Virus record (IMG/VR): IMGVR_UViG_3300020477_001008
Coordinates: 178,647-242,646 of that record
Length of the DNA stretch: 64,000 nucleotides
Reading direction: 5' to 3' (one strand)
Position numbers and translations under genes: made by a program. Positions 1,413 to 57,142 of the stretch are shown here, piece by piece. How positions within the stretch are numbered: the stretch's first letter is position 1; every line of letters begins with the position of its first letter. The notes beneath the pieces were generated by a model. It searched no databases and was not told where the DNA came from. It saw only the letters and a program-made list of their open reading frames with translations.

Positions 1413-1618
1413 AAACCAGGAAAGAGAGAATAAAAAAAATTGACATCAACGATGAAATTAGTGTACAATTAAAAGAAGTAAAAAAAACTATTGATATGGA
1501 AGGCATTAATCAAAGAACTCAAAAAACACTGGCACTCAATCACGGAGCAAAAGGTGAGACAGTAATATCCAAGGCTGACAAAGAATGGTTAGATCAGAAA
1601 TCAGATAATAATAAATGA
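1400..1618 (+). other. A_AAA_AAG slippery heptamer (1400-1406) and 70-codon -1 frame extension ending at TGA overlapping the clpX ATG
   Basis: 0 frame GTT AAA AAA AAG ACT TAA. The -1 frame has a stop just before the A-run, then is open 1406-1615 (DLKTRKERIKKIDIND...DQKSDNNK) and ends in an ATGA overlap. Confidence 0.55.
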
Positions 1619-2907
1619 GCGATAAAGAGATTAAAATGAAATGCTCGTTCTGTGAAAAGACTAGAGCCGAATCACATAAATTAATAGCAGGACCTAAAGA
1701 AACATTTATTTGCGATGAATGTGTAAAACTTTGCCACGATATTTTAAAAGAAGGAACAATTGAAAACGAAACAAAAGAGTTTGCTATTCCTGATCCAAAA
1801 AAATTACACGGATATTTAAATGAACACGTAATTGGTCAAGATAGAGCAAAGAAAATTGTTAGTGTAGCAGTTTATAACCATTATAAAAGAATTGTTAATA
1901 ATTTAATTAAAGAAGATGGGCAAGACGAAATTGAAAAATCTAATGTTATGATGTTAGGACCATCAGGTGTTGGAAAAACACTTTTAGCTAAAAAGGTTGC
2001 TGAATACGTAAATGTACCATTTGCTATTGCTGATGCAACAACAATAACAGAATCAGGTTATGTAGGTGATGACGTAGAGAATATTGTAACAAGATTATTG
2101 CAACAAGCAGACTTTAATGTTGAAAAAGCTGAACGTGGAATTATATACATTGATGAAATAGATAAAAAAGCAAAAAAAGGTGAGAACGTATCAATTACTA
2201 GAGATGTATCTGGTGAAGGTGTACAACAAGCTTTATTAAAAATTATTGAAGGAACAACTGTTAGAGTTCCGCCACAAGGTGGAAGAAAACATCCTGGTGC
2301 AGAAATGATTGAAGTTGATACATCAAATATATTGTTTATAGTTGGTGGAGCATTTGTTGGTATAGATAAAGTTATTAATAAAAGGGCTAATAAGTCAGCA
2401 GGTATTGGATTTAATCAACGAGTAGAAACTGTTGATACAGGATTTGATGAATGCGAACCAGATGATTTAATTAAGTATGGATTAATACCTGAACTTGTTG
2501 GAAGGTTACCAGTTATAGTAGGTTGTCATAATTTAGATAAAAAAGATTTAAAAGCAATTATGCTTGATGTAAAAAATTCATTGATTAAACAATCTCAACG
2601 TTTATTTAAAATGGAAAATGTAAATTTAATTATAACTGAAGATGCAGTAGATTATGTAGTAGATGAAGCACACGAAAAGAAATTAGGTGCTAGAGGATTA
2701 AAATCTGTGTTAGAAAAAGGTTTATTAGAAATACAATATGACTTACCAGAATACAGAGATGGTGGAGTTAGTGAAATTACAGTTACAGAAAAAACGCTCA
2801 AAGGAGAAAAACCGATGCTCACTTATGAGTTTGATGCTAAAGATATAAAAGCTAAAGAAACAAAAAAAGGGAAAAAGGAAGATAACGGTACAACAGGAAA
2901 AGAATGA
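1615..2907 (+). CDS. clpX: ATP-dependent Clp protease ATP-binding subunit ClpX
   Basis: CSFC...CDEC zinc domain, Walker [34 protein letters not shown] loop, GARGL. Confidence 0.97.
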
Positions 2908-3458
2908 AACAAAGATATAGTAATTACGAGTATCAAAAAAAGAAAGCATTAATTAACGAGAATATTAGAAGTAAAGAAGTTCGTTTAATATTAGAATCAT
3001 CACAAGAAATAGTAACTACACAAGAAGCATTAAGATTATCTAGAGAGCAAGATTTAGATCTAGTTTGTGTTAGCACAAAATCAAATCCACCTATATGTAA
3101 AATTATGGATTATGGGAAACATCTATATGAACAAAAAAAGAAACAAAAAATTGCTGATAAAAAACAAAGAGAAGCTATTGTGGATACAAAAGAAATCCAG
3201 TTTAGACCAGCAACTGGAATTGGAGATCTTAAAGTAAAAGCTAAAAAGGTACAAGAGTTTATAGATGATGGAGATAAGGTAAAATTAGTAATGAAATTGC
3301 GTGGCAGGGAAAATGCTATGAAGGATTTTGCTATGGAACAATTCAAAAAATTTGTTGATTTAATTGAGAATTATGACTACGATTATAGGCCAAATATACA
3401 GGGAAATAAAATACTTGCAATTTTAAAGAAAGGTGTTATAATAAAGAACAATGAGTGA
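2904..3458 (+). CDS. infC: Translation initiation factor IF-3
   Basis: [60 protein letters not shown]. Confidence 0.95.
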
Positions 3459-3807
3459 TAAACCAAGGAAAAAATACGACATCAAAAATTTCTCTAATTT
3501 TGGGAAATTTGAGCAAAAGCGAGATCGAAGACCAAGACGTGAGCCAGATCCACCTGGTTTAGCAGTTACAGTTCACGGCGACGATGTAATGAAAGCTTAT
3601 AGAAGGCTTAAAAAGAAACTAATGAAAGATAACCTTATGGATACAATAAGGGATAAAAGATATTACAAAAAGCCAAGTGAAATTAGACAAGAAAAATTAA
3701 AAGTGCAAAGAAGGAATATGCAAAAAGCTCAAAGAGATAGAGCTATGCAATATGGTATAAGATATAAAAACTATGATCCTAGCACAGCCAAAACACGTGG
3801 CTATTAA
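3451..3807 (+). CDS. rpsU: Ribosomal protein bS21 with N-terminal extension
   Basis: VTVHGDDVMKAYRRLKKKL...RDKRYYKKPSEIRQEK matches the bS21 core. Confidence 0.85.
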   Translation: MSDKPRKKYDIKNFSNFGKFEQKRDRRPRREPDPPGLAVTVHGDDVMKAYRRLKKKLMKDNLMDTIRDKRYYKKPSEIRQEKLKVQRRNMQKAQRDRAMQYGIRYKNYDPSTAKTRGY

Positions 3808-4133
3808 TGTTCGACCAAATAAAGTTTCATCAGCACCCCACAGAGAATAAAGGCAAACAAGCTATAATAGATTTTGTAGATTACAAAATGAGTATAGTAT
3901 GCTCACCTACATCTTATGGTGGAGATAAAGGTTTGTTTGAAATTGCAGTATTTGATAAAGCTGGAGAGTTTGTTGATTTAAAAGGTATTAGTGATAAAGA
4001 TGATCAAGTACACGGTTGGTTAAGAGAAGATGAAGTTGTATTAGTAATAGAAAAATTGTGTGAAATAACAGATATGGATGTTAGATTAGTTTTATTGCGT
4101 TCAGCATTTAGGGAGAACAAAAATGATAGATGA
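3807..4133 (+). CDS. Hypothetical phage protein
   Basis: Coupled ORF; SYGGDKGLFEIAVFD resembles a motif I recall from phage hypothetical proteins. Confidence 0.65.
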   Translation: MFDQIKFHQHPTENKGKQAIIDFVDYKMSIVCSPTSYGGDKGLFEIAVFDKAGEFVDLKGISDKDDQVHGWLREDEVVLVIEKLCEITDMDVRLVLLRSAFRENKNDR

Positions 4134-4275
4134 ACTTGTAGAACAAATAGCTAGAATGAACAAAGACGAAAGAAATGAATTTGTTGAAACTCTAGTTAAA
4201 AAATGGCCTGATTTATCAGAGTCAATTTATTTTTTATTAAATGTAAATTTAATGGAGAAGGAGAACATTAAATAG
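4123..4275 (+). CDS. Small hypothetical protein (50 aa; below ORF-track cutoff)
   Basis: ATG 4123 with GGGAG upstream; MIDELVEQIARMNKDERNEFVETLVKKWPDL...; TAG 4273-4275; fills the gap before the tRNAs. Confidence 0.6.
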   Translation: MIDELVEQIARMNKDERNEFVETLVKKWPDLSESIYFLLNVNLMEKENIK

Positions 4276-4288
4276 ATGTTTAATTCAA

Positions 4289-4364
4289 GGGCGGTTAGCT
4301 CAGTTGGTAGAGCATCTCGTTTACACCGAGGGGGTCAAAGGTTCGAGTCCTTTACTGCCCACCA
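4289..4364 (+). tRNA. tRNA-Val (TAC)
   Basis: Cloverleaf GGGCGGT/ACTGCCC, anticodon loop TT TAC AC, TTCGAGT, encoded CCA. Confidence 0.97.
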
Positions 4365-4368
4365 TTAC

Positions 4369-4444
4369 GGAGTATTAGTGTAGCGGTTAACACGTCGCCC
4401 TGTCACGGCGAAGACCACGGGTTCGAATCCCGTATACTCCGCCA
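4369..4444 (+). tRNA. tRNA-Asp (GTC)
   Basis: GGAGTAT/ATACTCC acceptor stem, TCGCC CT GTC AC GGCGA, TTCGAAT, CCA. Confidence 0.97.
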
Positions 4445-4450
4445 TCAACA

Positions 4451-4457
4451 ATAAATA
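4451..4457 (+). promoter_or_regulatory. T4-like late promoter box ATAAATA, 5 nt before sufS ATG
   Basis: One of at least 9 TAAATA-N5/N8-ATG instances in the window. Confidence 0.55.
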
Positions 4458-4462
4458 TTATT

Positions 4463-5668
4463 ATGCACAATATTCGAAAACAATTTCCCATATTTGATAA
4501 AACATTACCTAACGGTAAAAAATTAGTATATTTAGATAGTGCTAATTCTTCACAAAAACCGAAAAGGGTATTAGATAGATTATATGATTTTTATGCACAA
4601 GAATATAGTAGTGTTGGGAGAAGTATACACCAGTTAAGTACAGGTGCAAGTAAATGTTTAAATGATAGTAGAGAAGCAGTTGCAAAATTTTTAAATGCTG
4701 GTTCTGTAGATGAAATTGTTTTTACTAAAAGTGCCACAGAAGCTATTAATACGATTGCAGAAAGTTTTGGCAGAACTCAACGTGATCATTATGAAATAAT
4801 TTGTTCTGAATTAGAACATAATTCAAATTATCTTCCTTGGCATTTGCAAAGAGCTCATAAAAATGCAACAATTAAATTTATTCCTTTAAAAGATGATTAT
4901 ACATTAGATGTAGATAAGCTAGAAAGTTTAATTACTAAAAAAACTAAAATGATAGCAATAACTCATTTATCAAATGTTACTGGAGAAGTAATTAATGTTA
5001 AAAAAATATGTGAGATAGCACACAGTAAAGGAATAGCAGTTTTTGTAGATGGTACACAAGGTGCACCACATATGAAAGTTGATGTACAAGATATTGATTG
5101 TGATTTTTATTGTATTAGTGGTCATAAAATGTACGGACCTTCAGGCGTTGGGGCTTTGTACGCCAAAGAAAAATGGTTAGATGAATTATCGCCTTTTCAA
5201 GGTGGTGGTGGAACGGTACTTGATGCAACGCAAAGTGTTATTCAATATGCAGATGGACCAAAAAAATGGGAAGCTGGAACACACCCAGTTGCTGAAATTG
5301 TAGCATTAAAAGAAGCAATTGATTTTTATTATGATGTTGGATTTGATAATATGTTAAATCACGAAAAACAATTAGTTGAGTATTTGTATGAAAAATTAGC
5401 ATCTGATAATGATATTGAGTTACTATGTGGTAATAAGCCTAATGCTGTTTTATCATTTAATATTAAAGGAATACATCACGAAGATATGTCAATGTTTTTA
5501 GATGAATATGGTATTGCTACAAGACCAGGTCAACATTGTGCTATGTTATTCCATAAAAGGTACAGTTTAACTGGTTCTGTTAGAGTATCATTAGGTGTAT
5601 ATAATACCAAAGAAGAAATGGACTTTTTCTTACAGTCTTTGGGTGAAATTAAGAAGAGATTATCCTAA
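4463..5668 (+). CDS. sufS: Cysteine desulfurase, SufS type
   Basis: YLDSANSSQKP, DGTQG, SGHKMYGP (PLP Lys), EAGT, RPGQHCA (catalytic Cys). Confidence 0.93.
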   Translation: MHNIRKQFPIFDKTLPNGKKLVYLDSANSSQKPKRVLDRLYDFYAQEYSSVGRSIHQLSTGASKCLNDSREAVAKFLNAGSVDEIVFTKSATEAINTIAESFGRTQRDHYEIICSELEHNSNYLPWHLQRAHKNATIKFIPLKDDYTLDVDKLESLITKKTKMIAITHLSNVTGEVINVKKICEIAHSKGIAVFVDGTQGAPHMKVDVQDIDCDFYCISGHKMYGPSGVGALYAKEKWLDELSPFQGGGGTVLDATQSVIQYADGPKKWEAGTHPVAEIVALKEAIDFYYDVGFDNMLNHEKQLVEYLYEKLASDNDIELLCGNKPNAVLSFNIKGIHHEDMSMFLDEYGIATRPGQHCAMLFHKRYSLTGSVRVSLGVYNTKEEMDFFLQSLGEIKKRLS

Positions 5669-5673
5669 TCCTA

Positions 5674-5702
5674 TTGACTTCCTGATAAGTATTTTATATA
5701 AT
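5674..5702 (+). promoter_or_regulatory. Sigma70-type promoter
   Basis: TTGACT-N17-TATAAT upstream of rplL. Confidence 0.75.
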
Positions 5703-5739
5703 ACTGATGTACAATTAAATATAATTAATAAGGAAAACT

Positions 5740-6210
5740 ATGTCAGAAGATGAAGTAAAAAAAGCTGAAGAAACAAAGGCAGAAGAAAAGCCAGTAGAAC
5801 CAAAAGCTGAAGAAACATCTAAAACTATTACAAGAAATTTAGATGCTATTGTTGAAGAACTTGGACAATTAACAGTTATGGAAGCGGCCGATCTTGCTAA
5901 AAAATTAGCTAAAGCTTGGGATATTGATTTAGATAATATGGCGGCCGGTGTTGCACCAGCAGGTGGTGGCGCCGCGGGAGCTCCAGCAGACGCAGATGCT
6001 CCTGTAACAGTTATATTAAAAGATTTTAAAGAAGGTACTAAAATTAATGTCTTAAAAGCAATTAAGGCAATTAAAGGTTTAGGACTAATGGAATCTAAAC
6101 AATTTGTAGAAGCATTACCTAAAGAAGTTGATTCAGAAATACCAAGAGATAAAGCAGAAGAAATTAAAAAACAATTGGAAGAAGTTGGCGGTAACGTTGA
6201 AATAAAATAA
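5740..6210 (+). CDS. rplL: Ribosomal protein bL12 (L7/L12), divergent, with acidic N-terminal extension
   Basis: [20 protein letters not shown], Ala/Gly hinge, [41 protein letters not shown]. Confidence 0.9.
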
Positions 6211-7634
6211 TGTTAGATGAGCATAAGGTAGGAAAAGATTATAAAGAAGGCTTTACTACGGACATTGAAGCCTATACACTACCCCCTGGTCTAAATGAAG
6301 ACGTTATTAAAAAGATATCAAGTTTTAAAAAAGAACCACAATGGCTTTTAGACTGGAGACTAAAAGCTTATAAGGTTTGGCTGAATATGAAACAGCCTGA
6401 GTGGGCAAAGTTAGATATTAAGCCAATTGACTATCAAGCAATATCATATTATTCAACACCTAATCCTAAATTAAAATCTTTAGATGAATTAGATCCTAAA
6501 ATTTTAGAAACATATAATAAGTTAGGTATTCCATTACACGAACAAAAAGCATTAGCAGGTGTGGCCGTTGATGCAGTATTTGATTCTGTATCTGTAGCTA
6601 CAACGTACAAAGCAGATTTAGAAAAACAAGGTATACTTTTTTGTAGCTTTAGTGAAGCAGTAGAAAAATATCCAGAAATAGTTAAAAAATATTTAGGTAG
6701 TGTAGTACCACAAGGTGATAATTTTTTTGCTTGTTTAAATTCAGCTGTATTTACAGATGGTTCATTTGCTTATATTCCTAAAGGAGTTAGATGTCCTATG
6801 GAACTATCAACTTATTTTAGAATAAATGCGGCCAACACAGGACAATTTGAAAGAACATTAATTATATGTGAAGATGATGCATACGTATCTTATCTAGAAG
6901 GATGTACAGCACCAATGCGTGATGAAAATCAATTACACGCCGCGGTAGTTGAATTAGTAGCAAAAGAAAATGCAGAGATAAAATATTCAACAATACAAAA
7001 TTGGTATCCAGGAGATGAAGATGGAAAAGGTGGTGTATATAATTTTGTAACTAAACGTGGTAAATGTCAAGGACGTAAAAGTAAAATATCTTGGACACAA
7101 TTAGAAACAGGTTCAGCATTAACTTGGAAGTATCCTTCTTGTGTATTAATGGGAGATTATTCAGTAGGAGAGTTTTATTCAGTAGCAGTATCAACAGGTA
7201 AACAACAAGCTGATACAGGAACTAAAATGATACATTTAGGAAAACATACAAAATCAACAGTTATATCAAAAGGTATTTCAGCAAAACAAGGAAAGCAAAC
7301 TTATAGAGGATTAGTATCAATGGGTGGTAATGCTAAAAAATCACAAAACTATACTCAATGTGATTCGTTGCTTCTTGGAGATAAGTGTTCAGCACTTACT
7401 ATACCTTATATTAAAAGTAAAACAAAATCTTCTAAATGCGAACACGAAGCGTCAACATCAAAAGTATCTGATGAACAATTATTTTATTTAAGACAACGTG
7501 GACTTAAAGAAGAAGATGCTGTGAACTTAATTGTAAATGGTTTTGTAAAAGAAGTAACTAAACAGTTACCAATGGAGTTTGCAGTTGAGGCCAATAAACT
7601 TTTATCAGTAACATTAGAAGGATCAGTAGGATAA
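6210..7634 (+). CDS. sufB: Fe-S cluster assembly scaffold SufB
   Basis: [62 protein letters not shown]. Confidence 0.97.
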
Positions 7635-9961: not shown

Positions 9962-10891
9962 ATGATGAGAAAAATAATAAGCACAGCCTTGGTTGTATTA
10001 TTTGCAGGTTTTCTTTTTTCATTAACAGCTTGTAGTGAAGCTGAAGCAGTAGAAACAAATATCTACGGTTCAATAAACTATAAAGTTAGTAATGATGAAG
10101 ACACAAACGGCAAACACAATTTAAAGGCCGAAAATAACTCATCTTATGTTGGTATAGATGCCAGCGAAGGTATAGGCGAAGGCATAACAGGTTTCGCTAA
10201 ATTAGAAGTTGGCGTTGATACTGACGACAGTAATAACAATCCTTTTGATTCAAAGTTAGCCTATGTAGGTTTAAACTTTGGTGAGATTGGATCTGTATCT
10301 GCTGGGCGACAGTCATCTCCGTTCACTGATAATGTTAGTGGAAACACAGATGTATTTGAAGTTTATGGTTCAGGTGCTGATCAAAGTTTGTTCGTAAGAG
10401 ATACAAACACGATTGCGTACTCGAACGTATTAGGCCCACTTACATTTGATGGCTTGGCCAAAATAGATGGATCTACTGGTAAAAGTGGTGTAGATGTTGG
10501 AGAAGCAACAGTTACATACAATGGCAGTACGTTCACAGTATCAGGCGGTATGTCTAATGATAATGTCAATGACATTGATTATTATGGTGTTGGACTTACA
10601 GCAGATGCTTCATCTATAGGGCTTCCAATAACTGTGGGTTATACTCACACGTTAAAAGATGCCGCAACTGATGTAACAGGCAATGAAATCATTGGATCTT
10701 ATTCTACAGGTAATACAACAATTACAGGTGGATACGGTAAAATCGAAGATTCAACAGCATTTTATACTGCCGGTGCATCATTTGGAATAACTGATTCTTT
10801 ATCTACGTATGTTGAGTATGAACATTCAGATAAAACTGGATCATCTAATGATACAGACAATTATTCCACAGGTCTTAAATTTACTTTCTAA
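9962..10891 (+). CDS. Gram-negative outer-membrane porin
   Basis: Signal peptide, IYGSINY first strand, SSYVGIDASEGIGEG, AYVGLNFG...GR, amphipathic strands, C-terminal GLKFTF with terminal Phe. Confidence 0.85.
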   Translation: MMRKIISTALVVLFAGFLFSLTACSEAEAVETNIYGSINYKVSNDEDTNGKHNLKAENNSSYVGIDASEGIGEGITGFAKLEVGVDTDDSNNNPFDSKLAYVGLNFGEIGSVSAGRQSSPFTDNVSGNTDVFEVYGSGADQSLFVRDTNTIAYSNVLGPLTFDGLAKIDGSTGKSGVDVGEATVTYNGSTFTVSGGMSNDNVNDIDYYGVGLTADASSIGLPITVGYTHTLKDAATDVTGNEIIGSYSTGNTTITGGYGKIEDSTAFYTAGASFGITDSLSTYVEYEHSDKTGSSNDTDNYSTGLKFTF

Positions 10892-10925
10892 TTTAAGGCA
10901 TTTTCAAGTTAACTTGAGATAAATT

Positions 10926-10959
10926 GGGGGAAAGTTGGACAAACTTTCCACTTTTCCCC
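10926..10959 (+). terminator. Hairpin after porin, possible intrinsic terminator
   Basis: GGAAAGTT/AACTTTCC stem, with an alternative GGGGAAAG/CTTTTCCCC pairing; T-rich tract follows. Confidence 0.4.
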
Positions 10960-10991
10960 TCTTGACTTTTTTAAATTAATGTTTATATTAG

Positions 10992-10999
10992 TATAAATA
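10992..10999 (+). promoter_or_regulatory. T4 late promoter consensus TATAAATA upstream of hsp20
   Basis: Exact TATAAATA match. Confidence 0.65.
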
Positions 11000-11003
11000 A
11001 CTT

Positions 11004-11059
11004 TGTAGATTGCTTTAGATAGGATCTACATTACATAAACTTGCTTAAAAGGAGGAGTT
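11004..11059 (+). promoter_or_regulatory. Tandem ROSE-like RNA thermometer hairpins in hsp20 5' UTR
   Basis: Two hairpins each place UUGCU opposite purine-rich AGGA/GGAG with a bulged G; the second sequesters the SD. Confidence 0.55.
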
Positions 11060-11062
11060 AAA

Positions 11063-11506
11063 ATGACAAAAAATCTATCTATTTTTAATCAATTAAGACC
11101 AATAACAATAGGGTTCGATAATATATTTGACCATTTTGAGAATATGTTTGACGGAAACGTTATGACTATTCCACAAGTAAATTATCCACCATACAATATT
11201 GTAAGAACAGGAGACAACACTTATGATATTGAGTTAGCATTAGCAGGATTCAGCAAAGAAGATATTAATGTTGAATATGAAAATAATGTACTAACAGTAA
11301 AATCAATTAAAAAGGCAGAAGAAACAGAAGAACAAGCTGATGGAGTTATCCATAGAGGTATTTCTAAAAGAATGTTTTCTAAATCTTTTACAGTTGCCGA
11401 TGAAGTTGAGGTTAAAGGTGCAGAACTTAAAGATGGTTTGCTTAAAGTTTCTTTGGAAAGAATTATTCCAGAAGCTAAAAAGCCAAGAACTATCAAAATA
11501 AAATAA
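11063..11506 (+). CDS. hsp20: Small heat-shock protein Hsp20 (IbpA-like)
   Basis: IGFDNIFDHF, NYPPYNIVR, IELALAGFSKEDI, HRGISKRMF, AELKDGLLKVSLERIIPE. Confidence 0.95.
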   Translation: MTKNLSIFNQLRPITIGFDNIFDHFENMFDGNVMTIPQVNYPPYNIVRTGDNTYDIELALAGFSKEDINVEYENNVLTVKSIKKAEETEEQADGVIHRGISKRMFSKSFTVADEVEVKGAELKDGLLKVSLERIIPEAKKPRTIKIK

Positions 11507-11599: not shown

Positions 11600-13492
11600 A
11601 TGAGTAAAATAATTGGAATAGACTTAGGTACTACAAACTCTTGCGTTTCAGTAATGGAGGGTAAAGGTGCTAAAGTAATCGAAAATGCTGAAGGAAATAG
11701 AACAACACCTTCAGTTGTATCATTTGGAGATGAAAGATTAGTAGGTACACCGGCTAAAAGACAAGCGGTAACAAATCCAACTAATACAATTTTTGCAACC
11801 AAAAGATTAATTGGAAGAAAGTTTGATGGAGATTCTGTACAAAAAGATATACAGACATCACCATTTAAAATAGTAAAAGCAGATAACGGAGATGCTTGGG
11901 TAGAAAGTAATGGTGAAAAATACTCACCAAGTCAAATCTCAGCTTTCGTTTTACAAAAAATGAAAGAGACTGCTGAAAAGTATTTGGGACAAGAAGTAAC
12001 TAAAGCAGTTATTACCGTTCCTGCATACTTTAATGATTCACAAAGACAAGCAACTAAAGACGCAGGTAAAATTGCAGGACTTGATGTTGAACGTATAGTA
12101 AATGAACCAACAGCGGCGGCACTTGCTTATGGGCTTGATAAAAAGAAATCAGGTACAGTAGCAGTATACGATTTAGGTGGTGGTACATTTGATATTTCTA
12201 TATTAGAAATTGGCGATGGAGTATTTGAAGTTAAATCAACAAATGGTGATACATCATTAGGTGGTGAAGACTTTGATAATGTTTTAGTCAACTATATTGT
12301 TAGTGAATTTAAAAAAGATTCAGGTGTAGATTTAAAAAATGATAATCTTGCACTTCAACGTGTAAGAGAAGCGGCGGAAAAAGCAAAATGTGAATTATCA
12401 TCTGCAACACAAACAGATATTAGTTTACCATTTATTACCGCTGATAAATCTGGACCAAAACATTTAAATCTTAAACTTACAAGAGCTAAATTTGAAGCAC
12501 TTGTTGATAGTTTAATTGATAAAACACTAGAACCTTGTAAGACTGCCTTAAAAGATGCAGAACTTTCAGCAGGAGATATTAATGAAGTAATACTTGTTGG
12601 TGGTATGACAAGAATGCCAAAAGTTGAACAAGCAGTTAAAAACTTCTTTGGAAAAGATCCACATAAAGGAGTTAATCCAGATGAGGTAGTGGCAATTGGT
12701 GCCGCGATACAAGCCGGTGTGCTTCAAGGAGATGTAAAAGATGTATTGTTGTTAGACGTTACACCTTTATCACTTGGTATTGAAACATTAGGTAGTGTAT
12801 GTACAAAACTGATTGAAAAGAATACAACTATTCCTACAAGAAAAAGCCAAGTATTCTCTACAGCAGAAGATAGCCAACCTGCTGTTTCAATAAGAGTACT
12901 ACAAGGTGAAAGAGAAATGGCCGCTGATAATAAGTTATTAGGTAACTTTGAATTAGTTGGTATTGCACCTGCTCCAAGAGGAGTTCCACAAATCGAAGTA
13001 ACATTTGATATTGATGCAAATGGTATTGTAAATGTATCTGCTAAAGATAAAGGTACAGGCAAAGAACAAAAAATACAAATACAAGCATCAGGTGGATTGT
13101 CAGATGATGAAATTGACAAAATGGTTAAAGACGCAGAAGCAAATAAAGATGCTGATAAAAAGAAAAGAGAAGAAGTAGATACTAAAAACCAAGGAGATAC
13201 TTTAGTTCACTCTGTTGAAAAACAGTTAAAAGAACACGGAGACAAGTTATCTGCTGAAGATAAAAGTAAACTTGAAGAAGATGTTAATGCATTAAAAGAA
13301 GCATTAAAGTCTGACAATAGTGATGCTATTAAAGATAAAGTAAAATCTTTAACAGAGTCAGCAATGAAACTTGGTGAAGCAGTATACAAATCACAACAAT
13401 CAGAACAACCACAGCAAGAACAAAAAACAAAAGACGATAATGTAGTTGATGCTGATTTCGAAGAAGTCAATAAAAAAGACAGCAAACAGTAA
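11600..13492 (+). CDS. dnaK: Molecular chaperone DnaK (Hsp70)
   Basis: [76 protein letters not shown]. Confidence 0.99.
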
Positions 13493-15313: not shown

Positions 15314-15838
15314 ATGGATATAATCACAGGACATATAGCAGTTATAATCAGTATAGCAATTTTAATTAGTTTTGTTATATTAGCAATCGTTAAAAGACCT
15401 AAAGTAAAACTTTTTGTTAAGATTGCATCTACTACAATGGCAGTTGGAACTGTTATTGCTTTATATTTTGCTTTAGAAACTATGTATGGATGGCCTTGGA
15501 AAACCACTTTCCCAACTGGAAAATATACATATATCAGTCATACCGTTAGTGCAGATGAAGAGGAAATTTACATATGGCTAATTGATAGGAATAAAACTAG
15601 TGACTATGCTTTTTGGCAAAAATGGTTAATTAATGATAGACAACCAAGGAACATTAGTGTATTATATGATGATATGTTACACGAACAGCTACAAAAAATT
15701 CAAGAAATGGCGGCTGGACAACCATATCCGGTTGAACTAAAATCTATGAAATTAAAAGATGTAAAAGAAGGTGAAATAAATCGTTCGGATGAAACTTTAA
15801 ATTATATCTTACCAGATGTCAACATACAGGCAAAATAA
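15314..15838 (+). CDS. Two-TM membrane protein, third gene of the Mot/Exb-like triad
   Basis: Two N-terminal hydrophobic helices, then GWPW and a soluble domain; tightly coupled. Confidence 0.6.
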   Translation: MDIITGHIAVIISIAILISFVILAIVKRPKVKLFVKIASTTMAVGTVIALYFALETMYGWPWKTTFPTGKYTYISHTVSADEEEIYIWLIDRNKTSDYAFWQKWLINDRQPRNISVLYDDMLHEQLQKIQEMAAGQPYPVELKSMKLKDVKEGEINRSDETLNYILPDVNIQAK

Positions 15839-16140
15839 TGACTGAAGAAAAATCAAATCAGCAAGTACAAACAGATGTAGAAATAAAAGAACCAAGTAGA
15901 TATAATGTTCTGTTTATGAATGATGATTATACACCAATTGATTTTGTTCAACAATTATTAACAGATATATTTTATCATAAGCCTGATGATGCATCAGAAT
16001 TAGCAAAATTAATTCACGAAAAAGGTAAAGCAATTGTAGGAACATATACATATGAGGTTGCTGAACAAAAATCAATAGAATCAACAACGATGGCTAGATC
16101 CGCTGGACATCCTTTACAAGTAACAATAGAACAAGAATAA
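15838..16140 (+). CDS. clpS: N-end-rule adaptor ClpS
   Basis: YNVLFMNDDYTPIDFV, IHEKGKAIVGTYTYEVAEQK, HPLQVTIE. Confidence 0.92.
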   Translation: MTEEKSNQQVQTDVEIKEPSRYNVLFMNDDYTPIDFVQQLLTDIFYHKPDDASELAKLIHEKGKAIVGTYTYEVAEQKSIESTTMARSAGHPLQVTIEQE

Positions 16141-18059: not shown

Positions 18060-18647
18060 ATGAGTAATTTAATTCCAATAGTAGTAGATCAAACTTCAAG
18101 AGGTGAAAGAAGTTATGACATCTACTCAAGACTTTTAAAAGAACGAATTGTATTTGTAACAGGTCCAATTGACGATTCAGTTTCAAGTGTAGTTTGTGCC
18201 CAATTATTATTTTTAGAATCACAAGATCCTAAAAAAGATATCTTTATGTACATTAATTCTCCAGGAGGTATTGTAACTTCTGGTTTAGCTATGTACGACA
18301 CAATGCAGTATGTAAAACCAGATATTTCAACTGTATGTATTGGACAGGCCGCTAGTGCTGGATCATTATTATTAATGGCAGGTACAAAAGGCAAAAGAAT
18401 TGCATTACCTCATAGTAAAGTAATGATACACCAACCATCAGGTGGATTTAGAGGACAAGCAACAGATATAGAGATTCACGCAAAAGATATATTAGATACT
18501 AAAGCAAGATTGAATCAACTATACGTTAAGCATACAGGGAAGGATCTTAAAACAATTGAACAAGCTATGGAAAGAGATAATTTTATGACAGCTCAACAAG
18601 CCATAGATTTTGGATTAATTGATAAGATAGAAGAAACCCGTGCTTAA
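18060..18647 (+). CDS. clpP: ATP-dependent Clp protease proteolytic subunit
   Basis: [51 protein letters not shown]. Confidence 0.98.
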
Positions 18648-28831: not shown

Positions 28832-30392
28832 AGATAGACATAATTATCGTCCTGTTGATTTATATTATCAACATATTAACAAGAGTAATAACTCTTGGTG
28901 TCCGTTGCCTTGGGCTCAAGTGGCAGTTCATAATTCTGGTGAATATAGAAGTTGTATACAAGCAAGATCTTGTAAAAAAACAAAAGGTATTTTAAAAGAC
29001 GAAAATAATAAAATTATGAGAGCAGAAGTTAATACTATTGATGAAGTTAGAAATGCACCGTTACTAAAAGATGTACGTAAAGATATGTTAGATGGAAAAC
29101 GCCATAGTATGTGTATTAGATGTAATGAAGAAGATGATGCAAAAATGAATTCAAGACGTAGAAATGCAATCAGAGAATATTATTTAAAATACAGTTATGA
29201 TATGTTTGATGCAGAATCAAGTACTAATTCTGATGGAACATTAATTACAGATAAAGCACCAATATTAGAATGGGATATTAGATTAGGTAATTTGTGTAAT
29301 TTAAGATGTCGTATGTGTAACCCAAGTGAAAGTACACAGTGGTATGATGAATGGTTTGATACTATGTTTTCAGGTTTTAAAACAGATTTCACAAGAGTTG
29401 AATTAATAAAAGATAGAGGAAAGGCCCAACCTAAAGATGACATATATGGTTGGTATGCAAAAGCTAATTTCTTTGATCAGTTTGATAATAGTTCAATTGG
29501 TACAAAGAAAATATATTTCTCAGGTGGAGAGCCAACGTTAGTAGAAAATATGTATGATATGTTACAAAAATTAATTGATAGCGGTATAGCAAAAGATATG
29601 GAATTAGAATATAATATTAATTTAACTAATATTCCAAGGAGAGCAATTAACTTATGGCACGAATTTAAAAAAGTACAGTTAGGATGTAGTATAGACGGTG
29701 TTGGAAAAATTAATGATTATATAAGATATCCAAGTAAGTGGAATAAGATAGATGAAAATATTAAATGGCTAGATACTAATACTAAATCAAATATTGTTTT
29801 ATTCAATACATTTACTTGGCAGATTTTAAATGCAGTTGAAGTATTAGATCTAGTTAAGTATCAAATAGAAAATAACTTTACTAAATTTAATTTTGCTGTC
29901 AATAGTGTATTTTTTAGTATGCATTTTTTACACTCTCCTGACTATTTAAATGTAAAAGCTTTACCTAGAGAGCTAAAAGAATATGTACAGCACGAGTTTG
30001 ATAAATTTGATAATGAATTTTTTAAACCTTGGGTAGATAATTTGCCAGATGATGCAAAAATATTAGGTCATAGATTTAAACAAAAAGATGATGATATAGA
30101 ACCTGAAATACCAATATTTCAAGAGATGCTTCCTTTACCTAAAAAATATCTTACTAAAGATAAGTTTAATGAACAAAATGAAAGTTATGATTGGTATGGA
30201 ACTAAAAGAAAGTTTTATTATAAATGGAAAGATAAAATGCAATCAATGTTAGACTTTATGTGGAGTGAAGACAAATCAGAACATTTTGACGAATTTGTTG
30301 AAAGAATGAAAATACAAGACAAATACAGAAATGAAAAATTAGAGGACTTATATCCACAAATAAGTAACTATATAAGGAAAAAATATCAATGA
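28821..30392 (+). CDS. Radical SAM protein, class A (paralog copy 2, with C-terminal insertion)
   Basis: CPLPW...SCIQARSC...CIRC; GNLCNLRCRMC; near-identical blocks to 27431. Confidence 0.92.
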   Translation: MSFKDRHNYRPVDLYYQHINKSNNSWCPLPWAQVAVHNSGEYRSCIQARSCKKTKGILKDENNKIMRAEVNTIDEVRNAPLLKDVRKDMLDGKRHSMCIRCNEEDDAKMNSRRRNAIREYYLKYSYDMFDAESSTNSDGTLITDKAPILEWDIRLGNLCNLRCRMCNPSESTQWYDEWFDTMFSGFKTDFTRVELIKDRGKAQPKDDIYGWYAKANFFDQFDNSSIGTKKIYFSGGEPTLVENMYDMLQKLIDSGIAKDMELEYNINLTNIPRRAINLWHEFKKVQLGCSIDGVGKINDYIRYPSKWNKIDENIKWLDTNTKSNIVLFNTFTWQILNAVEVLDLVKYQIENNFTKFNFAVNSVFFSMHFLHSPDYLNVKALPRELKEYVQHEFDKFDNEFFKPWVDNLPDDAKILGHRFKQKDDDIEPEIPIFQEMLPLPKKYLTKDKFNEQNESYDWYGTKRKFYYKWKDKMQSMLDFMWSEDKSEHFDEFVERMKIQDKYRNEKLEDLYPQISNYIRKKYQ

Positions 30393-56503: not shown

Positions 56504-57142
56504 ATGGACCTTGAATATCTAAAAAAATTAGCAGGGATAGGTGAGCAGAATCAAATGAAAAGTTTGGCTCAAGAAATGGCCGAACGTAGAAGAGACATTA
56601 TGAAAAATGTAATGAAAGAACAAAAAGAAGAACAATTGGAATTACAAGCACTTCCTTACAAAATTACAGATTTAGCACCAGTACTATCAAAAGAAAATGT
56701 TGATTATCATTATGATATATTAAGTAGAGGATACGTAAACAGATATAATAATAATGAAGGCGATTCAGACTTTAATTATGGTGGTGCAAAACTACACAAT
56801 TTATGGTGGCAACAATTTAAACCAGCAAAAGAAACATCAAATTACAGCGGTCCTATAAAGCAAACTATAGATGCTAATTATGGTGATTTAAAAGGTTTAG
56901 AAGAAAAATTAGTTGAAGCCGCAATGACTATACAAGGATCAGGATGGGTTTATCTAACTAAAACTGGAACAATTAAAACAACACCAAATCAAAGTTACAA
57001 ACCAGATGTGTTTATGCCTATAGATATGTGGGAACACAGCTTCACGGACTATGTACCAGCCAAAGACGCAAAGGTTAAATACATTAAAGCAGTTCTTAAA
57101 TTAATAGATTGGAATGCGATTAATAGAAGGTTAGAAGGATGA
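56504..57142 (+). CDS. sod: Fe/Mn superoxide dismutase with N-terminal extension
   Basis: LPY...YHY, LHNLWW, QGSGW, PNQ, DMWEH: all four metal ligands present; Gly-Gly and NQ suggest Mn-type. Confidence 0.9.
   Translation: MDLEYLKKLAGIGEQNQMKSLAQEMAERRRDIMKNVMKEQKEEQLELQALPYKITDLAPVLSKENVDYHYDILSRGYVNRYNNNEGDSDFNYGGAKLHNLWWQQFKPAKETSNYSGPIKQTIDANYGDLKGLEEKLVEAAMTIQGSGWVYLTKTGTIKTTPNQSYKPDVFMPIDMWEHSFTDYVPAKDAKVKYIKAVLKLIDWNAINRRLEG

Follow-up and report, generated by a model that had tools for sequence, protein, structure and literature searches.

Components of the translation machinery are encoded by several groups of phages, and the ribosomal proteins bS21 and bL12 and translation initiation factor 3 (IF3) have each been reported there, as an initial reading of the DNA studied here (hereafter, the original prediction) rightly stated (PMC6375957, PMC7162821, PMC7824862). 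The DNA is a window of 64,000 nucleotides (nt) from IMG/VR virus record IMGVR_UViG_3300020477_001008 (positions 178,647 to 242,646), in which infC (IF3), rpsU (bS21), and rplL (bL12) lie within 3.3 kb. Our preferred explanation, to which we assign a probability of roughly 0.6, is that the window belongs to the auxiliary region of a jumbo myovirus whose old clpX-infC-rpsU core, joined by add-on genes, supplies parts that enter host ribosomes.

The closest precedent for the ribosomal proteins is the work of Mizuno et al. 2019 (PMC6375957), who described bS21 of Pelagibacter phage HTVC008M together with viral bL12 and bL33. As in that study, the families occur here on bona fide phage DNA from aquatic samples, with signs of purifying selection (the two features, viral genome and selection, by which virus-encoded ribosomal proteins were recognized there) and a bias toward exchangeable proteins; HTVC008M and the phage described here also share the same probable host group, SAR11. 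However, more than 99% of the contigs in that study carried one ribosomal protein and eight carried two, whereas this genome encodes four, along with IF3 and transfer-messenger RNA (tmRNA). In addition, its bS21 is not of the HTVC008M type, because a tblastn search of the 50,697 phage records of INPHARED returned no match at an E value of 1e-3.

The huge phages that Al-Shayeb et al. 2020 described (PMC7162821) likewise have genomes of >200 kb and encode IF1 or IF3, S21, L7/L12, tmRNA, and tRNAs, and the model proposed for them, redirection of host translation, is the one we favor. In contrast to those phages, clpX-infC-rpsU forms a conserved unit here with overlapping stop and start codons, and the stalk pair bL12 and uL11 co-occurs; a lineage associated with open-ocean alphaproteobacteria also differs from most of their clades in host and habitat. 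In the Rak2-like “group 2.2” phages CBB, GAP32, XaC1, and PA5oct (PMC7824862), which resemble this phage in the baseplate wedge (33–42% identity) and the T4-like virion core, IF3 also lies next to a gene of the Clp system. That neighbor encodes a ClpS-domain protein in cultured members, including CBB and XaC1, and ClpX here. Neither of the two loci inspected (CBB and XaC1) has a ribosomal protein gene near IF3, and the Rak2-like IF3 sequences are only 34–41% identical to that of this phage.

Several ribosomal proteins, including uL11, have also been described in the Microcystis jumbo phage PhiMa05/MaAM05 (PMC13157829), and rplK of MaAM05 encodes a product 53.6% identical to the uL11 reported below. 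PhiMa05 has six ribosomal proteins, belongs to a different phage lineage, and infects a cyanobacterium; the text of that report mentions no IF3. According to that 2026 report, no virus known before PhiMa05 had more than three ribosomal proteins (PMC13157829), so the four found here would rank second.

A T4-like marine jumbo phage

The window spans the final 64 kb of one 242,646-bp contig with a GC content of 0.32; positions below are those of the window unless marked as genome positions. We compared it with related loci designated L019 (from IMG/VR), L102/L103, L104, L105, L108, and L109. The source entry carries a virus-record label, and the same contig encodes T4-type virion proteins (major capsid protein Gp23, portal protein Gp20, large terminase, prohead protease, sheath, gp25, gp15, and baseplate proteins). 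Its baseplate wedge gene (phrog_10646, 1069 bits) has its best matches, at 33–42% identity, in PA5oct, SCTP-2, Atu_ph07, and Rak2-like jumbo phages. A search for rRNA throughout the genome found none. Based on these predicted genes and a size of >200 kb, the features that characterize group 2.2, the contig is a T4-like/Rak2-like marine jumbo myovirus, as the original prediction had supposed of its phage origin. We found no terminal repeat on the 242,646-bp contig. A sister contig of 311,421 bp (ERZ5402506 NODE_5) extends ~39 kb past the end of the window (63999 onward), so the 242.6-kb record is probably incomplete. The additional ~39 kb encodes a methyltransferase, Hfq, Hc1, an IscA-like protein, Cpn10, a clamp loader, and more radical-SAM proteins.

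The original prediction was to be abandoned if the contig proved cellular or chimeric. In favor of cellular DNA, or of a mis-assembly fusing bacterial genes to a phage contig, one can cite genes of a typically cellular kind and the 64–67% identity of uL11 to that of SAR11. Against it, base composition is even along the window (GC 0.27–0.37), phage structural genes stand on the same contig, and the gene order of the window was recovered in ENA/Tara, JGI, and NCBI contigs and persists in diverged relatives; an identical IF3 protein occurs in 31 indexed blocks of public assemblies. Because many marine metagenomes independently yielded this gene order, the contig is neither cellular nor chimeric. 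We consider an artifact refuted for practical purposes and its residual likelihood negligible.

Intact translation genes with phage-specific features

As predicted, infC, rpsU, and rplL are present and intact on the plus strand (Table 1), and all three products score above curated family cut-offs. IF3 contains an IF3_N domain (residues 17–82) followed by an IF3_C domain (residues 93–175), with a lysine-rich linker between them. It aligned to E. coli IF3 across residues 16–174, thus covering both domains, and its C-domain retains the FRP and RGRE stretches. Members of the IF3 family bind the 30S subunit, prevent the subunits from joining, and proofread the start codon and initiator tRNA. Cellular infC typically starts with a non-AUG codon (AUU in E. 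coli), and IF3 represses its own synthesis through that start. In the window, L019, L102, L104, and L108, infC begins with ATG, with no non-AUG autoregulatory start; the phage gene should therefore escape the IF3 autoregulation loop, and phage IF3 could depress host infC. The L109 translation opens with valine, consistent with a GTG start. A seemingly broken infC in L105 was considered as a pseudogene, but this was ruled out, as the break is a scaffold gap of 10 N.

Typical bS21 is a small, single-domain protein of about 55–75 amino acids (aa). The phage protein exceeds this size: it has 118 aa, with the S21 domain at residues 39–92 flanked by an N-terminal extension of ~38 aa and a C-terminal extension of ~20 aa. 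The N-terminal extension, which contains a KPRK motif and basic and aromatic residues, is kept in all six phage lineages, and the C-terminal extension, with an RYKNYDP motif, is kept in five but absent from L109. Neither extension occurs in alphaproteobacterial bS21. Among solved structures, the best match was the longer mitochondrial bS21m (E value of 1e-5). Basic and aromatic N-terminal extensions on S21 of huge phages were reported earlier (PMC7162821).

The bL12 protein contains an N-domain (residues 35–81) and a C-domain (residues 90–156), the latter with the invariant K, G, E, and P residues preserved, and it aligned to T. maritima L7/L12 over the N-domain, hinge, and C-domain. An acidic and lysine-rich N-terminal extension of ~32 aa is present in the bL12 of the window, L019, and P0003, whereas L102 and L108 are without it. 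A Shine-Dalgarno (SD) sequence, AAGGA, lies 7 nt upstream of the rplL ATG. In this family, bL12 dimers bind the C-terminal helix of uL10; a modeled complex of two phage bL12 N-domains with Pelagibacteraceae uL10 received a score of 0.18 (mark, 0.34), a value that bears on binding in neither direction.

Comparison with relatives gave ratios of nonsynonymous to synonymous substitution rates (dN/dS) of 0.12–0.16 for infC, 0.06–0.24 for rpsU, and 0.21–0.37 for rplL, with 0.06–0.13 for the neighboring clpX. These ratios, which are near those of the neighbors clpX and sufS, indicate that all three genes are under purifying selection.

A conserved core and a mobile rplL

The arrangement clpX-infC-rpsU, preceded by the same small open reading frame (ORF), recurs in six related loci, whereas the position of rplL varies. 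In L019 (bL12 71% identical to that of the window) and L102/L103 (bS21 85% identical over the alignment), rplL is present and encodes proteins of 154 aa and 122 aa, respectively. In L104 (bS21 80% identical over the alignment), it is absent between sufS and sufB. In L108 (IF3 58–60% identical), a 121-aa version follows sufB-sufD and tRNA-Asp, and in L109 (IF3 45–47% identical), no rplL lies within 9 kb on either side of infC. Furthermore, the rplL products of the window and L102 are only 56% identical, whereas those of neighboring genes are 80–92% identical, and a quick tree grouped rplL of the window with that of another phage type, not with L102. Because the synteny of the core is kept while rplL is absent or moved and its tree is discordant, these comparisons indicate that clpX-infC-rpsU is an old, stable core of the phage family and that rplL is a mobile accessory. 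The three genes do not form a single co-inherited module: clpX-infC-rpsU stays syntenic down to 45–60% IF3 identity and rplL does not. More generally, rplL, uL11, elongation factor G (EF-G), and bL33 appear to be add-ons that vary between lineages.

Since IF3 stands beside ClpS in cultured Rak2-like phages, the association of IF3 with the Clp system would predate the marine family. A common origin of marine and Rak2-like IF3 is not claimed; the grouping was weak, with an SH-like approximate likelihood ratio test (SH-aLRT) value of 77. A pattern scan of IMG/VR with bL12 found one relative, and 11 bL12 matches in INPHARED were set aside as they look like bacterial contamination.

Gene order and promoter positions suggest two transcription units, both headed by a sigma70-like promoter of the host type: orf40-clpX-infC-rpsU-orf108-orf50-tRNAVal-tRNAAsp-sufS behind P1, and rplL-sufB with downstream genes behind P2. 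The first five coding genes of the first unit (orf40 to orf108) all have overlapping stop and start codons, with overlaps of 4 nt for clpX/infC, 8 nt for infC/rpsU, and 1 nt for rpsU/orf108; rplL and sufB overlap by 1 nt. P1 and P2 occupy the only sizeable gaps in the region. P1 is conserved in L019, L102, L104, and even L108, in which the proteins share only 58–72% identity with those of the window. P2 is conserved in L019 and L102, and in L104 it stands directly ahead of sufB. Across the genome, strict sigma70-like matches numbered 12 compared with 3.7 in shuffles, and 9 of the 12 fall within non-coding DNA, which makes up 7.4% of the genome.

These results agree with the predicted location outside any ribosomal operon, as neither rplJ, rpoB, nor any other ribosomal-operon gene adjoins the three genes. 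The prediction that rplL has its own sigma70 promoter was borne out in part. A conserved sigma70-like site does precede rplL; however, because the site leads directly to sufB in L104, P2 is better described as the putative promoter of the rplL-sufB unit.

Table 1. Predicted features of the window, with the evidence for each
Feature	Coordinates	Strand	Evidence
Sigma70-like promoter P1, TTGACA-18-TACAAT	1440..1469	+	11/12 consensus positions; intergenic, ahead of orf40-clpX-infC-rpsU
orf40, small conserved ORF	1496..1618	+	Stop overlaps clpX start; ORF of 40–44 aa at same place in relatives
clpX, AAA+ unfoldase with N-terminal zinc finger	1615..2907	+	NF003745, 550.9 bits (cut-off 359); zf-C4_ClpX and AAA_2
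infC, IF3, 184 aa	2904..3458	+	TIGR00168, 152.3 bits (cut-off 60); PHROG 9787, 184.5 bits; N- and C-domains (PF05198 and PF00707)
rpsU, bS21, 118 aa	3451..3807	+	PF01165, 42.3 bits (cut-off 27); TIGR00030, 44.7 bits (cut-off 28.95)
orf108, conserved protein without family	3807..4133	+	45–80% identity in L019, L102, L104
orf50, small conserved ORF	4123..4275	+	84–86% identity in L102, L104; dN/dS 0.07–0.14
tRNA-Val(TAC)	4289..4364	+	ARAGORN; Rfam tRNA, 68–73 bits (both tRNAs)
tRNA-Asp(GTC)	4369..4444	+	ARAGORN; Rfam tRNA, 68–73 bits (both tRNAs)
sufS-family cysteine desulfurase	4463..5668	+	Aminotran_5, 411.9 bits; TIGR01979, 466.9 bits, just below cut-off of 475.1
Sigma70-like promoter P2, TTGACT-17-TATAAT	5674..5702	+	11/12 consensus positions; 71-nt gap before rplL
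rplL, bL12, 156 aa	5740..6210	+	TIGR00855, 99.6 bits (cut-off 84.4); N- and C-domains (PF16320 and PF00542)
sufB	6210..7634	+	NF008773, 856.5 bits (cut-off 717)
dnaK (HSP70)	11600..13492	+	Pfam HSP70 match
clpS adaptor	15838..16140	+	Pfam ClpS match
clpP protease subunit	18060..18647	+	Pfam CLP_protease match

Other translation and proteostasis genes

The count of three translation genes in the original prediction was too low. Using tblastn, we first located a uL11 gene at genome positions 125472–125948 on the minus strand (L007:9472–9948), and its product scored 201.5 bits against a TIGR01632 cut-off of 141.85. In three independent assemblies, among 24 contigs covered, this gene stands between the tail sheath gene and gp13/gp15. 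A bL33 gene at genome positions 111091–111294 on the plus strand (L006:14091–14294) passed PF00471 (33.8 bits; cut-off 25) and, marginally, TIGR01023 (27.1 bits; cut-off 23.95). A tmRNA of the permuted Alphaproteobacteria type (RF01849, 152.8 bits) lies ~6 kb upstream of the window at genome positions 172221–172515 (L010:6221–6515), and its tag reads ADENLALAA. Scanning ORFs of at least 30 aa genome-wide, apart from six boundary-straddling ORFs and a 4061-aa ORF, we identified no ribosomal proteins other than bS21, bL12, uL11, and bL33.

The predicted complement of this phage is therefore four ribosomal proteins, IF3, and tmRNA. Although each kind of gene was known before in phages, this set places it among the phages best equipped to alter host ribosomes. 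The genome also encodes nine tRNAs, two of them within the first transcription unit, as well as an Smr-domain protein and a CspA-like cold-shock protein. EF-G was sought in this genome by tblastn and was not found, whereas it is present in L109, where a full-length EF-G (689 aa), Smr, two cold-shock proteins, and uL11 are encoded just upstream of clpX-infC-rpsU (L109:215–3469).

SufE, SufS, SufB, Nfu, ClpX, ClpS, ClpP, DnaK, and HSP20 are encoded around infC, rpsU, and rplL, and a second ClpP and SufC/SufD-type genes occur elsewhere in the genome. In bacteria, ClpX and ClpP degrade ssrA-tagged proteins; the phage encodes both.

Probable host

Two genes associate the phage with SAR11. The five best of 63 named cellular homologs of uL11 all belong to Pelagibacteraceae (64–67% aa identity), and the clade uniting phage and SAR11 uL11 has an SH-aLRT value of 93. 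Among 401 alphaproteobacterial genomes, the best match to the tmRNA was in a Pelagibacteraceae genome (72% over 227 nt). The tags of the phage and of that genome both have nine residues and end in ALAA, whereas tags of other alphaproteobacteria have 11–12 residues. Together with the low GC content, the affinities of uL11 and tmRNA suggest a Pelagibacterales (SAR11-like) alphaproteobacterium as the probable host.

The proteins nearest to IF3 are marine and encoded on large contigs, in identity tiers of 76–93%, 48–61%, and 45–48%, and those whose context was checked (L019, L102, L104, L108, and L109) are phage-like. A word-based search with bS21 found only its own clade. Thirteen marine bL12 sequences group in a single, long-stemmed clade (SH-aLRT 98) within Alphaproteobacteria, next to Sphingomonadales; their genomic context is viral-looking, and 5 of the 13 are confirmed phage loci.

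Candidate role in host translation

The 70S ribosomes of E. coli incorporate viral bS21, including that of a pelagiphage, and viral bL12; among ribosomal proteins, viruses favor the exchangeable ones (PMC6375957). From this precedent, and from the gene content, integrity, selection, synteny, and promoters described above, we infer that the ribosomal proteins and IF3 of this phage may likewise enter host ribosomes. Sigma70-like sites are consistent with transcription by host RNA polymerase and hence, by analogy with T4 biology, early expression; both units would then be transcribed early in infection. The phage ribosomal proteins, as peripheral and exchangeable parts, would replace or top up the host copies in existing ribosomes. 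Their expected locations are the platform of the 30S subunit beside the anti-Shine-Dalgarno tail for bS21, the GTPase-associated stalk for bL12 and uL11, and the vicinity of the E site for bL33. Phage IF3 would enlarge the pool of initiation-ready 30S subunits and tighten AUG selection, the conserved extensions of bS21 would yield phage-flavored ribosomes in place of mere replenishment, and tmRNA, ClpXP, and chaperones would clear stalled and misfolded products. A broader version is tentative, and we find it somewhat doubtful: a widespread family of SAR11-type jumbo phages would build modified ribosomes, in which the ancient, early clpX-infC-rpsU unit, through a tailed bS21 and a self-sufficient IF3, biases initiation in favor of phage mRNAs, lineage-specific bL12, uL11, and EF-G at the GTPase-associated center and bL33 at the E site tune elongation, and tmRNA and ClpXP clear stalls.

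Several results weigh against the phage-modified ribosome. The early timing is read from promoter consensus, and uL11 sits among late structural genes. The close relative L104 dispenses with rplL at this site. The host assignment draws on two genes and base composition, and the remaining genes do not point the same way: cell-labeled IF3 matches reach at most 47% identity and belong to no single taxon, bS21 is 27–34% identical to its counterparts in five alphaproteobacterial genomes, and bL12 does not group with SAR11. In addition, the trees come from quick searches with short alignments of short proteins.

The main rival is plain replenishment, whereby the phage, after shutting down host gene expression, would restore labile, exchangeable ribosome parts and IF3 without any selectivity for phage messages, so that translation continues in a slow-growing, ribosome-poor cell. 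All four ribosomal proteins are peripheral, and the exchangeable proteins listed in PMC6375957 include bS21, bL12, and bL33; uL11 resembles an unmodified copy from the host, bL12 has an ordinary length in L102 and L108, and the neighboring chaperone, protease, and Fe-S assembly genes are of a housekeeping type. However, the bS21 extensions are conserved across diverged phage lineages and absent from cellular bS21, and IF3 and bS21 are far diverged from every cell homolog sampled. Together, these features suggest a phage-specific property and not a simple copy, and we consider replenishment without selectivity unlikely, albeit the strongest competitor to a phage-modified ribosome.

In the model of the original prediction, infC, rpsU, and rplL would act as one coordinated module rewiring initiation and factor recruitment, possibly in connection with a mixture of leaderless and SD-led phage mRNAs. 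The three genes are indeed close and conserved together in the window, L019, L102/L103, and L108, and an SD core precedes only 36–41% of ORFs (background, 5–8%). Yet rplL and infC-rpsU lie in different transcription units, the rplL tree departs from those of other genes, and rplL is missing from the site in L104, moved in L108, and not near infC in L109; given its absence in L104, cooperation among all three cannot be obligatory. IF3 on the 30S subunit discriminates against leaderless mRNAs, whereas IF3 on the 50S subunit near bL33, which this phage also encodes, may favor their initiation (PMC8138138). Moreover, an ORF without an SD core is not leaderless on that account, as most of these ORFs are internal to operons. 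Such coordination is, in our judgment, improbable. We give still less credence, and regard as very improbable, a use away from the ribosome, with the proteins serving as decoys or antidotes against host defenses that act on translation, as regulators of phage mRNA, or as clients or adaptors of ClpX. The overlap of clpX, infC, and rpsU in every lineage seen, the ClpS-like neighbors of IF3 in cultured relatives, and the additional tails of bS21 would fit such a use, and roles in ribosome rescue or counter-defense have been proposed in reviews of jumbo phages (PMC7824862). Nevertheless, the domains and conserved residues of all three proteins match the ribosomal forms, the incorporation of viral bS21 and bL12 into ribosomes has experimental precedent, and no defense or anti-defense gene was identified beside the three genes.

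The lineage described here offers a comparative series for asking whether phages specialize host ribosomes, with a fixed clpX-infC-rpsU arrangement over deep divergence, a tailed bS21, and natural variation in the presence of bL12, uL11, and EF-G. If the host is SAR11, the effect acts in the most abundant bacterium of the ocean. One published pipeline for marine jumbo phages discarded bins containing two or more ribosomal proteins (PMC9123017), which may be why the lineage is little described; such phages will escape screens that take a second ribosomal protein as a sign of cellular contamination.

Additional features of the genome

Searches for a family match found none for orf40, none for orf50 (Pfam and other profiles), and none in Pfam, PHROG, or NCBIfam for orf108. 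The gene for orf108 overlaps both the 3′ end of rpsU and orf50. AlphaFold modeled its product as beta strands with two helices, at a mean predicted local distance difference test (pLDDT) value of 79.7; a search of the PDB returned no fold match at an E value of 1e-3 or better, and the nearest Atlas clusters are viral. The orf108 product could be a partner of the infC-rpsU pair.

Downstream of SufS, SufB, Nfu, and an FeS_assembly_P protein, the window encodes ~13 tandem radical-SAM/SPASM paralogs of 360–575 aa each (20169–41408), and additional radical-SAM genes occur elsewhere in the genome. An intergenic 33-aa ORF on the minus strand (genome positions 28846–28947; L002:8846–8947) consists of 55% Lys and Arg and has no family match; it may be spurious. 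A glutamine riboswitch (RF01739, 61.4 bits) at genome positions 10819–10871 (L001:10819–10871) precedes a lysine-rich ORF of 57 aa (genome positions 10894–11067). An AdoCbl-II (B12) riboswitch at genome positions 142165–142243 (L008:6165–6243) comes directly after a strict sigma70-like promoter (genome positions 142128–142155), and a TonB-dependent receptor (Plug and barrel) is encoded in the same third of the genome.

Phages seldom carry respiratory-chain genes. Cytochrome b is encoded in related phage contigs (L100:8402–9652, L101:8947–10197, and L108:17326–18540), and the phage itself encodes ferredoxins and, upstream of the window, a CtaG/Cox11-type copper chaperone (L011:2104–2520). The window also contains genes for an outer-membrane porin (Porin_1; 9962–10891) and an Fe/Mn superoxide dismutase (56504–57142).

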